A stretch of DNA of 64,000 nt from Bugula neritina. Taxonomy: Eukaryota > Animalia > Bryozoa. The notes beneath the pieces were generated by a model. The model saw only the letters and a program-made list of their open reading frames with translations. It did no database searches and had not been told where the DNA came from. Each line of letters starts with the position of its first letter. Position 1 is the stretch's first letter. The DNA is taken from NCBI GenBank assembly GCA_964035545.1, contig OZ037767.1:19360628-19424627 (forward strand), read 5' to 3'. A program made the position numbers and the translations under genes. Positions 572 through 58,575 of the stretch are shown here, in pieces.

Positions 572-776
572 TCTGTCCCGCATCTTGTGGACGTGGATGT
601 CAATACTATAACCACACAGTCTACCAGAGGGAGGAAGTGTGAGTTTATAATAGATTAGATAATAGAAGTTTTCTTCTTTTGTCTTAGGCTCACTGCATAT
701 CTGTATTGTAATTATTTTATTATATTAAATATATCATATTTTATTAACAGCATTTACAGACAACTTACCTCCATGA
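572..776 (+). CDS. pepA: 3' part of a secreted prepropeptide gene (exon 1 outside window). Exons 572-638 and 751-776: SVPHLVDVDVNTITTQSTRGRK|SFTDNLPP*. Truncated member or pseudogene
   Basis: ttcag/gtgagt and aacag splice sites; phase-1 junction; exon 2 homologous to pepB exon 2 and exon 3 homologous to pepC exon 3; TGA at 774-776 replaces the motif Gly while homology continues in frame (NQKTTHHRNYRKSNTLQDILRRIAN). Confidence 0.7.
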
Positions 777-1677
777 AATCAAAAAACTACTCATCACAGA
801 AATTACAGGAAATCAAACACCTTACAAGATATTTTGAGAAGAATTGCTAATAATATGGTAGATGTTACTTTAGAAGAAACATACTTTTATTTATACAATT
901 AAAACAAATAGAATATCTTTATATTAATGTTTTCTTGTATTTCGAAGACAACATAATGTTTAAATAAAATATTGTGATGAGCTTTACAGGTCTTGTTTTG
1001 GTACTCAATATACTTTCTGTGCTGTTTGTGTATTATATATAAGGACAAACTACTAGTCATTGGTTTGAATATGAATAACAAGTAGCTGTCGAAAGTAGAC
1101 TTTTGGAGTAGATTGTAACACATGTAGATGTATTTACTTTTTTTGAATCTTAATTAAAGATATAATAGACTATAGAGGAATAATTTGAAAATTGCTACAA
1201 TGTTCAAAAATACTCTTTCTCATTGTAAGGTGTCTCAAAATACAATTTTATGAAATTGAAATGACATACCATAAACACAATGATCAACTTTTCTCATTAT
1301 CTATAAACAAAGCAAAGATTAAAATGTGCTATTTCTAAATTCTAGCAGTTTTTAATATTTACTCTCAAAAACTGAAAGTTTATGTAACTCAGTAAAGATG
1401 AAGATACACTTAACGCAGCAAACATAATGCAAGCTGTGTTTATGATTTCTTAAGAAAATGTTTTGTAAATTAATTAAACCTTTTGCAAAACATCATGTTT
1501 TTTCAAAGAATAATAAAATTAACTATAATATGTCATAAACTAATAGAAAAATTAGAGTTGTGGTAGAATATCATATTATTGTGAAGCATGATGTAATCAT
1601 TTAAATTAGTGAGTTTCTAACAGAAATAAAGTAACAGAATACTAGAAGGGTTGTGTTAGTATTTTTACTCTCTTCAG

Positions 1678-1832
1678 CATTTCAATCATTACACAATCAA
1701 GCCACAAAAACGGGAGTCCAGGCCCTTCTCGTGACCTATGAAATTTTATTAGATTTGGAGGAGCATTTAGTTTGCACAAGTTTATTTAATAGCTTAGATG
1801 ACCTCACATTATTAGCTATGGAATTGAGCTAA
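1678..1832 (+). other. Candidate orphan terminal exon (phase 1): (S)FQSLHNQATKTGVQALLVTYEILLDLEEHLVCTSLFNSLDDLTLLAMELS*
   Basis: Strong polypyrimidine acceptor (atttttactctcttcag) followed by 50 stop-free codons in AT-rich DNA; no upstream exon securely linked. Confidence 0.3.
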
Positions 1833-2058
1833 CTGCAGTCTTACTATGTATAGATAAGACTATGATATGATAGATAAAACGTTATTGAAAGCTCCTACAA
1901 TAAACTCACCATTAACTGTAACAAAACATAGTAACATTTATAGAAACACTAATGGCATTGTTTCTGTTACTTACTCTTCTCAGTAACTAAACATTAATTG
2001 TATAGGGGCACTGTAATGCTATGTTTTTTGTTGCTAGGTAGTGACAGCTTGTAATGTG

Positions 2059-2910
2059 ATCACGTGACTGGTCACATGATAGTTATGGAACAGCTAGCAG
2101 CCCTTTCATAGAATATATTACTCAGTAACTTTGAGGCAGTTCAGGTTTGTAGAAGGTAAAGTTTATAATATTATTTTCATCCAAGTTCGCACCTATATTA
2201 CTATATGCTATAGGTAAAATAATATGTGTAAAAATCCCTGATCTCTTGGAATCAGGTTTTACAGTACAAGAGTTGCCTAATTTGTAGATAATAACTGCAC
2301 ATCTATCTTTCTACATAACATCAGCAGAGCTGCATTTGAACTGGAGCATTTCAGCTATATACTTCATGTACTTTTTATTTGCTAGCAAAAAGCTTGCCAT
2401 CAGATGGCATTCACTGTGCATTTAGAACGTGACTTTACAAATCTGTACTAGACTGAAGACTATAAAATAGAGGCTATGTCATTATTTGACATGCATGTTA
2501 TTATGTTTAATTTTGACAGTTCGGATGCTAATTTATTTTTTATATTTGCTCATACATGTTATTTATTTCTATTATTATTCACGTGCAGCAAATAATCAAA
2601 AAGTTTTTACCAATAAACAACTAATTATAATTTAACTTATCACAGGATGAACTCTTGCCTTAAAGTTACAAAAATGTAACAGAAGTTGATTTTTGCTCAT
2701 CTTTGATCTCTAAACATGATCTGCTGTTTAATCAATGACAAACTCATACTCGCTCAGGAAGAACTTCTGGTAGAAAGTTTTGTCCTAAATTCTGGCTCCA
2801 CAAGATGTAGGGTTACTGTCTGATTGTTTTATATAAAAGAGAACACATTACTAACAGATATTCTGATTGGCTGACATAAAACAGAGTAACCTTACATGAT
2901 TGGCTGATTC
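2059..2910 (+). promoter_or_regulatory. Possible promoter elements upstream of the LRR gene: paired E-boxes (~2059-2080) and two inverted CCAAT boxes (~2865, ~2897)
   Basis: gatcacgtgactggtcacatgat; tgattggctga twice, about 32 bp apart; motif match only. Confidence 0.25.
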
Positions 2911-3471
2911 CACATTATGGCTGAAAGTAAGACAGTTTCGGTAAACGGTGTCTTATAATTTAGTAATCAGCTTTCTTCATAAGAATAGGCCATGAATAAC
3001 CCAGCAAAAGAAAAGTGAATGAAAATTATAACGATATCTCACCATTCTAAAACACATCTGCTCAAAAACAGTTGTGCAATATTTTTATGTGAAATATTCT
3101 ATATATTTTAAATTTATAATTCTTGAGTTCATTTTCAGAACTCACAGTTTAAATATTTTAAAATTGTAGTTCAAAATTATATATCTGGAAGTTTAGGTTT
3201 TATGATAACAAACCAGTTTTGATTTGTAGTTTCACAGATCAGTATTATTCTATACATAATAAATTTAAATCTAACTGGTATTATAATGTAAAATATTTTA
3301 AATATCGAAATCTGACTGCGATAATACAATATGGAATATTTATATTTTTAGTTTTTTAGATGTGCATCTAATACTATGTCTAACTTGTAGGTATAGAATG
3401 TACCAAGTACTTCCGTTTTATGTGCATGTATTTATATTGTGTGTTTGATTTCTAGATAAAAATATAGAATA

Positions 3472-56980: not shown

Positions 56981-57205
56981 TCCACACTGCATCCCACCCA
57001 ATTCTCTGAACTCCACTGGTCTCTCTACTACTCCTTCAGTCATCAGGTTCTCCTGGCCTCTCAAATCTCTTTGAGTACTACTACTACACTTCACTAAAGG
57101 CCGAAATAGCTTGTAAAAACTTTGCCCCCACTGGGATTCGAACCACAGACCTTGGAATGCAAGCAGGCTAGCAAACCAATTACACCACAGGGGCTGCTGG
57201 GTAAA
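56981..57205 (-). mobile_element. tRNA-derived SINE-like insertion (tRNA-like head 57194-57124)
   Basis: A box TGGTGTAATTGG, B box GGTTCGAATCCC, acceptor-like stem GCCCCTG/TGGGGGC; absent at the paralogous site ~13350. Confidence 0.7.
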
Positions 57206-57677
57206 CTTAACAGTACATTTACGAGAATTAATTAGAAATATTTTATAAATCAAGCTCTAGTTGTAATAGCAAGTAGCAGTAAATTATGAAAAATGAATGT
57301 TTTTGATAAGTGCACAAATGCAGGCAGCTAGTTTATCACAGCACAGAAAGCTATACTGACTGGTGGAAAGACAAAAACAACCACATTGATACAAGCATAG
57401 AGCTTGAACACCAGTAATCAATTAGCATTGCCAAAAAGATCTAGTATATTGAATACATGATAATAAAGGGTTAAATTTAGTTGAATGCAACATATACCAT
57501 GTCATGAGTCATTCCCTTCCATCTTTAGTTTAACTGACAATAAACTCCTAAAATGTTTGCAAATCACAAACAATGGCTCACATATAGATTATAATATTAT
57601 AGCGTATAATTAAATTTGAAGGCCGAAAAGTATTGCATTTTTATTGTAATATATATTTACAACTTTCTATAAAAAAC

Positions 57678-57791
57678 ATATATATATATATATATATATA
57701 TATATATATATATATATATATATATATATATATATATATATATATATATATATATATATATATATATATATATATATATATATATATATAT
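57678..57791. repeat. (TA)n microsatellite
   Basis: Direct observation; the paralogous sites have only short TA runs. Confidence 0.95.
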
Positions 57792-58527
57792 CATCCTTGC
57801 CAACAGTTTTACCCTTCAGTTAAAAGAGTAGCAGGTAATGGATAGATAAAGAGCAAACAGAATTAGAGTTCCTTGTATGTTACAGACAGTTCTAATCTAA
57901 TACACTGAGCTCTATCACACTATCACTCTTATCAGTGAAACTGCAGTTATATAAAGACATTATTTGAAAAATGCAGGAAAAAGCTGTTCAACTGTGTTCA
58001 TGACAATAAAACTTGGCATAAGCACAACATAGTAAACTAAATGATATAAATACAATATCGCCAGCAACCATACATGTAGAAGCAGTAAAATTCTAAAAGG
58101 AAGTTCTCCATAGCCTATAAGCTTTAGGCTGCAAAGTGATATTTTTAGAAAGTAGCGGTTAACCAAAATACATGTGACACAACAAGGCTGTTTTATTACC
58201 CAGACTTATAATATAGTCATACAAAGAGAATAGCAGCAGTTGGTTGCAATGAAAACTGGTAAAAATATCCTCATTCTATTTTCAGCACTTCAGTGTTTAT
58301 ATATAACAATAGCAGGAAGTAAATGTATTGCTGTGCAGTGAAGATATAGCATGCAGTGAAACTATAAGTTACTGATCAGGTTCTAATCAAAAACATCAAT
58401 TTTTTTATCAAGTGTATGATAACATAATATTTTGTTACAAAAATAAAAAACACATAAAAAAGATGTAAAGAAAAGATATGAATGCTTTACATAAATCGTT
58501 CGTTTGTATATTGTCCATTGGGGATCT

Positions 58528-58575
58528 TTACTTTGTAGCCTCTAATATCCTTCGTAATATTTCTAGCAATGTTTC
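58528..58575 (-). pseudogene. pepF copy 2 remnant: only the 3' tip (TLLEILRRILEATK*) survives
   Basis: Sequence matching ~14560-14605 is joined directly to sequence matching ~16295, implying a ~1.7-kb deletion. Confidence 0.7.

Follow-up and report, generated by a model that had tools for sequence, protein, structure and literature searches.

What do the small exons clustered in a 64,000-nucleotide stretch of chromosome C3 of the bryozoan Bugula neritina encode? This stretch, hereafter the window (C3:19360628-19424627), is AT-rich, with about 30% G+C. A first-pass annotation had proposed that it contains about 14 small secreted prepropeptide genes of six types, on both strands, belonging to an unrecognised family. 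We counted 14 family loci of these types in the window, on both strands, and all nine peptide strings quoted in that annotation were recovered where it had placed them. Our analysis supports a real, lineage-restricted tandem family of small, putatively secreted precursors with birth-and-death turnover, as had been suggested. We favor, with moderate confidence, the reading that the precursors yield peptides that would act as extracellular ligands through a shared core, much like hormones or neuropeptides.

Gene architecture and extent of the cluster

Gene models were built upstream of each terminal exon by looking for its acceptor, for internal exons flanked by YAG and GT, and for a first exon with an ATG, a hydrophobic core and a GT donor in phase 0. 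Fifteen explicit models translate without internal stops and use canonical AG acceptors and GT donors. The donors are mostly GTAAGT or GTGAGT; weak ones are found in G (GTTCTT) and C (GTGTAG). The first exon is 21-26 codons long and always ends in phase 0. It starts with Met plus Lys or Arg, contains a hydrophobic core (at least 7 of 9 residues) with small residues near the exon end, and is predicted to encode a signal peptide. The last intron is in phase 1 in every model (15/15). Both phases agree with the first-pass annotation. The precursors are 75-173 residues long and contain no cysteines. Of 16 start codons, 12 have a TATA-like box 65-122 nt upstream; the excess over background is weak (p about 0.02), and the boxes were not used as support.

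The genes fall into two layouts, with three exons in P, B, C, D, G, F4 and F5 and four in F1-F3, F6 and P3. The third exon of the four-exon genes is 47-91 codons long, a correction to the earlier description, in which most coding exons had 19-53 codons. These five genes share a 21-codon exon that begins with DPVVATL, and an exon that begins with x-L-x-N-S-x-T-L-E-V-E-I-R-x-S-D-F and continues into a proline-rich linker of variable length. Exon 2 of G aligns to the latter exon (E 0.005), and the pro-regions are therefore not all unrelated. They had been described as unalignable between types; this does not apply to F, P3 and G, which share the TLEVEIRxSDF segment, or to F and P3, which share DPVVATL.

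Nine of the 14 loci in the window are intact models (C, P, B, D, G, F1, F2, C2 and P2), three are broken full copies (the A chimera, B2 and D2) and two are fragments (Gp and H). A loose six-frame motif scan found 13 last-exon copies in the window with the start pattern [H/F]-x-(x)-G/D-N-x-P/H. We also examined 30 kb on either side of the window and a further 30 kb downstream. The cluster, earlier placed at 572-58575, does occupy this interval and runs past both ends of the window. C0 is located before its start, at about -3.5 to -2.8 kb. P3, F3, F4, F5 and F6 are located past its end, between +64.5 and +91.1 kb. Together, the window and flanks contain 20 loci over about 94 kb, 15 intact and 5 broken. 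No further copies were found downstream, out to +124 kb.

A last-exon profile search of the genome, a check that the first-pass annotation had proposed, gave a consistent picture. The profile was built from ten last exons and run against the whole 216,009,554-base assembly; only the best-scoring candidates were scored, and the count is a lower bound. At least 15 matches were obtained (E 7.7e-15 to 0.01), all within the cluster at C3:19357762-19431208, and none of the matches listed is a copy outside it.

The layout of the cluster reflects a 15-kb segmental duplication, 5175-20171 against 49239-63781 (80-87% identity), and smaller duplications. The large event copied the C-P-B-D gene block; the interval containing G (14607-16289) is absent from the second copy. 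These segmental duplications, the five broken copies and a G orthologue that is dead in another Bugula lineage together point to birth-and-death turnover.

Database searches indicate a prepropeptide gene family that is restricted to its taxon and has no description in the literature searched. Cluster members were searched exon by exon, and the GenBank proteins KAF6034451.1 and KAF6034452.1 served as stand-ins for full-length searches and folds. A profile search with the last-exon alignment against 1.84 billion representative proteins returned only Bugula family members and two repeat proteins, which we take to be spurious. One of the matches is an unspliced P-type reading frame on a JGI metagenome contig. 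KAF6034451.1 (125 residues) is spliced exactly as the four-exon P3 model and has a near-copy, KAF6034077.1; KAF6034452.1 (148 residues) is spliced exactly as the four-exon F model. All three are B. neritina entries from assembly GCA_010799875.2 and are named "hypothetical protein". The family is thus unrecognised in the sense that no described family was matched; it was not wholly hidden, since these three members had already been predicted. The annotation of GCA_010799875.2 was made with AUGUSTUS using transcriptome hints (PMC7576161). The AUGUSTUS models are gene predictions independent of ours, not direct RNA proof.

Other searches were negative. Pfam gave no relevant match for nine last exons, KAF6034451.1 or KAF6034452.1. 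A protein homologue search with the G open frame found only its frameshifted JGI orthologue, and one with KAF6034452.1 found only itself. Core strings had only chance matches in the literature.

In the cluster region, the GenBank and JGI contigs share only 84-91% identity with the present genome, and are therefore useful for comparison. The JGI metagenome contigs (samples 3300003318 and 3300002729, labelled AY690838) are host DNA from a Bugula lineage that is 10-15% diverged, and they provide a usable outgroup for the cluster and for other loci. We calculated the ratio of nonsynonymous to synonymous substitution rates (dN/dS) by the Nei-Gojobori method. It is 0.77 for P/P2, 0.76 for B/B2, 0.48 for C/C2, 0.54 for P/JGI, 0.49 for P3/GenBank, 0.33 for F3/GenBank and 0.43 for F1/F3. 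Pooled over five independent pairs, the proportion of synonymous differences (pS) is 0.132 and that of nonsynonymous differences (pN) 0.067, with a ratio of 0.48 (Fisher p = 1.6e-4). In exon 2, of which 61 of the 64 bases align, P and P2 are identical over the aligned bases; the first introns of the same duplicates are 87% identical. The reading frame survives in-frame deletions of 3 and 39 nt in the F4 orthologue and a 3-nt deletion in C0. The invariant core residues use varied codons among paralogues (Gly GGT/GGA/GGC, Asn AAT/AAC, Pro CCT/CCA, second Gly GGA/GGG/GGT), which argues that the constraint acts at the amino-acid level. Protein-level constraint on the coding sequence is supported by these data.

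The conserved core and its predicted processing

Only one segment is conserved across all types. It reads S-[H/F]-x-G-N-x-P-[I/F/L]-G and is located at or within two codons of the last exon junction. The first-pass annotation had described a last-exon motif followed by an amphipathic helix. The shared motif stands. The tail helix also has a pattern common to the types, approximately x-L-L-E-I-L-x-x-x-L; its amphipathicity is weakly supported, the hydrophobic moment being marginal against shuffled sequences (p 0.04-0.2 per gene).

The residues around the core differ between types. Basic sites directly precede it in P (RVRK), B (RIRR) and D (RNRR). A single Lys precedes it in F1, F4 and F5, and a single Arg in C; F2, F3, F6, G and P3 have no basic site before it. 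After the core, B carries RR and then RK, and G carries RK. D reads KN, and its broken copy D2 reads RR at this position. In F1, F2 and F3 the core Gly is followed by RRRR, in F6 by KR. In F4 and F5 (window +77.7 kb and +85.4 kb), a TGA stop comes directly after the Gly of SFVGNPPIG. P has no basic site after the core and keeps the core with the tail helix, about 33 residues. P3 has no cleavage site directly after the core, and a KR lies inside its tail helix.

In substrates of peptidyl-glycine amidating enzyme, the classical signature of amidation is a Gly that precedes basic residues or a stop. This signature is found in F1-F6 and is absent from P, P3 and C.

These motifs suggest how the peptides may be made. 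Each precursor would enter the secretory pathway through its 21-26-residue signal peptide, encoded by its own exon. Prohormone-convertase-type cleavage would then free the nine-residue core, cutting directly before it at RVRK, RIRR and RNRR in P, B and D, and after it at KR, RK, RR or RRRR in F1-F3, F6, G, B and the broken copy D2. In the F types, a carboxypeptidase and the peptidyl-glycine amidating enzyme would leave a peptide ending in GNPPI-amide. In F4 and F5 the amide donor is the last residue, so the carboxypeptidase step would not be needed. If the F-type N-terminus is cut at the preceding Lys, the product would be SFVGNPPI-NH2 (828.45 Da, computed [M+H]+ 829.457). Further candidate peptides predicted for the cluster are SHTGNVPFGFTQ, SFTDNLPLGIQPTTH and longer forms ending in GNPPI-amide. 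With no downstream site, the P type would give a peptide of about 33 residues containing the core and the C-terminal helix. One N-terminus proposed earlier, GIAGNVHL, is not retained: the true AG acceptor gives the C-type junction R-IAGNVHL. The released peptides would act as extracellular ligands, with the shared core as the part that is recognised.

Structure prediction is consistent with this reading. AlphaFold2 gave a predicted local distance difference test (pLDDT) score of 50 for KAF6034451.1, which is P3-like, with helices only at 4-17, 23-57 and 110-121; the first of these is in keeping with an N-terminal signal peptide. The ESM Atlas had no usable match, and its models have pLDDT of 0.48-0.49. 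The low-confidence helices, the disorder and the lack of a globular domain suggest a prohormone rather than a folded domain. Generic amidated neuropeptide and peptide-hormone precursors are likewise built of a signal peptide, a spacer and a peptide whose final Gly precedes basic residues or a stop, and they lack a globular fold. Unlike them, the cluster genes had no detectable homology to a described family, and several members have no upstream cleavage site.

The P, B and C types also resemble, by analogy only, the ligands of class B1 G protein-coupled receptors (glucagon, secretin and VIP), peptides of about 30 residues that begin with a conserved segment and continue into a variable helix. 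Unlike those ligands, the nine last exons, KAF6034451.1 and KAF6034452.1 gave no match to Pfam PF00123 (Hormone_2) even at E up to 10, and membership in the glucagon/secretin/VIP family was not supported. A likeness to glucagon, VIP and GHRH based on apparent shared strings was supported by no test and was dropped.

Several observations weigh against a ligand role. The N-termini of the F2, F3, F6, G and P3 products are undefined, since none of these precursors carries a basic site ahead of the core. No transcript-derived protein of the family was found in the protein collections searched. Selection is only moderate, with per-pair dN/dS of 0.33-0.86, and 5 of the 20 loci are broken. Several copies are decaying. 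In the GenBank/JGI lineage G is dead, with exon 1 lost, frameshifts and loss of the core, and the C core there has decayed to IAENVR. The searches made found no homologue outside Bugula, and no receptor for the family is known.

Ancestry and alternative functions

Is the family related to any peptide already described in B. neritina? A survey of its neuropeptides listed 11 precursors, and none of the cluster genes is among them (PMC4990251). One of the known products is the FDSIG peptide SFDSIGNGPIGL, with the pattern SxDxIGxGPIGL (Wong et al., 2016; PMC4990251). Its published precursor complementary DNA, BnFDSIG-like, encodes 293 residues and eight peptides (PMC4990251). We located the genomic gene at C3:27769050-27772078, with an open reading frame at 1336-2010 within it. 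It contains nine 12-mers bounded by KR, seven of which start with SFDSIGNG, and the genome has six exact tandem copies of FDSIGNGPIG. The peptide copy number may vary, with nine in the genome and eight in the published sequence. In our gene model, a 30-codon signal exon ending in phase 0 precedes a 31-codon exon, and the last intron is in phase 1.

The family could be a divergent offshoot of the pedal peptide/orcokinin (FDSIG-type) group, in which tandem peptide copies have been replaced by tandem single-copy genes. We regard this as possible but doubtful. As a statement on ancestry, it does not conflict with the ligand reading. At 7 of 9 positions the F core SFVGNPPIG agrees with the FDSIG peptide, given one two-residue gap. 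Alignment of the family core with the nine genomic FDSIG repeats by hhalign gave P = 0.0019 over 8 columns; this value needs a multiple-test discount, because the resemblance was noticed after reading a table of eleven precursors, and the hhalign probability is only 14%. The FDSIG gene is on the same chromosome as the cluster, 8.4 Mb away. In our model it has the same intron phases as the cluster genes, 0 after the signal exon and 1 in the last intron, which is a common pattern. Its precursor ends in KR, an acidic spacer and a helix-like tail, as does F6. On the other side, the family cores score 1.8 with a hidden Markov model of the FDSIG repeats, within the noise of a six-frame translation of 124 kb. 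Searches with the family pro-region exons against the FDSIG locus (tblastn) gave nothing credible, and a protein homologue search with the FDSIG exon gave nothing useful. All 15 models carry one core per precursor, against nine in the FDSIG gene.

The two systems compare as follows. BnFDSIG-like and the cluster genes are in the same species and on the same chromosome, and share a signal peptide, peptides bounded by basic sites, the pattern S-F-..-(I/V)-G-N-x-P-I-G, exon phases of 0 then 1, and an acidic or helical C-terminal tail. Unlike the cluster genes, BnFDSIG-like has nine tandem 12-mers in one exon, and they are not amidated. Each cluster gene has a single core, which is located at an exon junction and often carries an amidation signal, and the pro-regions showed no similarity to BnFDSIG-like; the resemblance is not statistically secure. 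Because of the 14% probability, the score within noise, the lack of pro-region similarity and the absence of the multi-copy architecture, we do not file the family as an FDSIG member. The FDSIG peptide is the closest known thing, and the link is suggestive only. The first-pass annotation had called the family unrecognised; because its core resembles the FDSIG peptides, it may not be wholly without relatives.

A more specific proposal combines ancestry and function. The cluster would be an undescribed bryozoan ligand family with a fixed message and an exchangeable address, in which an invariant core at the exon junction is combined with amidation, dibasic cleavage or a retained helix, and it would derive from an FDSIG/pedal-peptide-type ancestor. 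We offer this tentatively and judge it rather unlikely in this complete form.

The first-pass annotation had named signalling and defense together. The processing signals fit a peptide signal, and we found no specific support for defense. In a defense or symbiont-control role, cationic amphipathic tails would be the active part, and an arms race would have driven the expansion. The family is indeed tandem, fast-turning-over, taxon-restricted and predicted to be secreted, and the tails of B and F1-F3 are strongly cationic. However, it is the neutral nine-residue core, not the tail, that is conserved across all types. P-type products are acidic, cysteines are absent, F4 and F5 have lost their tails altogether, and amphipathicity is not clearly above that of shuffled controls. 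A defense role thus seems improbable. Conotoxins and amphibian skin peptides also form tandem, fast-evolving, secreted families with birth-and-death turnover. Those families keep the signal and pro-region and have a hypervariable mature peptide; the cluster shows the reverse, with a fixed nine-residue core and a diverging signal, pro-region and tail.

We consider it just as improbable that the genes encode secreted proline-rich proteins without a signalling function, such as matrix or adhesive proteins, in which the core serves as a sorting or modification signal. The F-type linkers are long, length-variable and Pro-rich, that of F6 has repeated PSVLKP-like units, and several types have no cleavage site before the core. 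The P, B, C and D types, however, have no such linker, the core is flanked by dibasic and Gly signals, and the proteins are very small.

Least probable of all is that the cluster is mostly dead, the models being prediction artefacts or decaying relics that have ceased to be expressed, since the broken loci, the loss of G in another lineage, the weak donors of G and C and the lack of a transcript-derived protein are set against P, P3, F and F4, which keep frames, splice sites and core between lineages 10-15% diverged, the pooled dN/dS, and the synonymous variation at invariant residues.

Individual loci, their surroundings and implications

We describe the loci in the order of the window. Locus A (572..860, plus strand) is a broken chimera in which a P-like exon 2 ending in RGRK is joined to a B-like last exon; a stop interrupts the core of the latter directly after FTDNLPP. 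Gene C (5377..6049, minus strand) is intact, with exons 6049-5984, 5706-5628 and 5465-5377, and its degenerate core R-IAGNVHL is followed by the tail helix. Gene P (7115..8229, plus strand) is intact and encodes 75 residues in exons 7115-7177, 7943-8006 and 8129-8229, with RVRK joined to SHIGGNAP at the junction. Gene B (8786..10042, plus strand) is also intact, with 107 residues in exons 8786-8857, 9470-9608 and 9930-10042; RIRR is joined to SFTDNLPLG, and its RR and RK sites are located downstream. Gene D (10487..11607, minus strand) is an open model of 118 residues with exons 11607-11539, 10994-10835 and 10614-10487. RNRR is joined to SHTGNVPFG, and the tail is degenerate.

Gene G (14560..16165, minus strand) is intact here and encodes 108 residues in exons 16165-16100, 14916-14754 and 14657-14560. 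Its core NSHVGNPPFA is followed by RK, and its donors are weak. Fragment Gp (22034..22131, minus strand) has only a G-like last exon with an in-frame stop; the bound at 22034 is approximate and was set by homology to the G last exon. A 607-bp pure (TG)n microsatellite (22196-22802) directly adjoins this pseudo-exon.

Two F genes are located near the middle of the window, both on the plus strand and intact. F1 (26210..27108) encodes 144 residues in exons 26210-26272, 26380-26442, 26614-26830 and 27017-27108, with the core KSFVGNPPIG followed by RRRR. F2 (30582..31527) encodes 142 residues in exons 30582-30644, 30752-30814, 30986-31196 and 31436-31527, with the core NSFSGNPPIG followed by RRRR.

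The second half of the window holds the duplicates. C2 (49447..50128, minus strand) is an intact duplicate of C with exons 50128-50063, 49776-49698 and approximately 49535-49447, the start of the last being set by analogy with the C acceptor. P2 (50915..51932, plus strand) is an intact duplicate of P with exons 50915-50977, 51645-51708 and 51832-51932. B2 (52477..53708, plus strand), a duplicate of B, has one in-frame stop in the tail helix, and its core and upstream exons are intact. D2 (54059..55326, minus strand) is a broken duplicate of D whose signal exon has lost 17 nt by deletion and whose exon 2 is frameshifted by indels; it retains the core SHTGNVPFG. Fragment H (58528..58575, minus strand) consists of a G-like tail helix and stop only, at the edge of the segmental duplication. 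Long (TA)n tracts are found close to the duplication edges, at 20097-20199 and 57678-57791. Inside the duplicated block, a 21-bp tandem repeat occupies 60680-60858 (8.5 copies, 91% match).

Between F2 and C2 the cluster is interrupted by a GC-rich insertion (about 50%) that resembles a long terminal repeat retrotransposon (39600-44750, minus strand). It contains gag-like, protease-like, reverse-transcriptase/RNase H-like and integrase-like reading frames that are split by stops. A second GC-rich patch (33850-34870, minus strand; 50% G+C), with reading frames of 104 and 158 residues, is probably a mobile-element fragment. Upstream, 30 to 20 kb ahead of the window, the cluster borders on a LATS/NDR-like protein kinase gene that has long low-complexity exons of Ser, Pro and Leu. 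EVEVRAS-like tblastn matches upstream fall in the stretch that holds this unrelated gene and were rejected as family pieces.

Neuropeptide catalogues cover Bryozoa poorly. About 15 candidate peptide genes are added by the cluster, with predicted products such as the peptide ending in GNPPI-amide. If the genes are silent, this would be merely a decaying orphan cluster, and its value depends on RNA and peptide confirmation. The cluster offers a clean case of birth-and-death evolution in which a tiny core is fixed and its surroundings change, including how the peptide would be cut out. If the link to FDSIG and the pedal peptides is true, the family would have gone from several tandem peptides within a single gene to a tandem array of genes, which is an unusual path. 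Receptors for the pedal-peptide-type family were still unidentified as of a 2017 paper. Ligands of that ancestry would give natural variants for receptor finding and for studies of larval and colony signalling.

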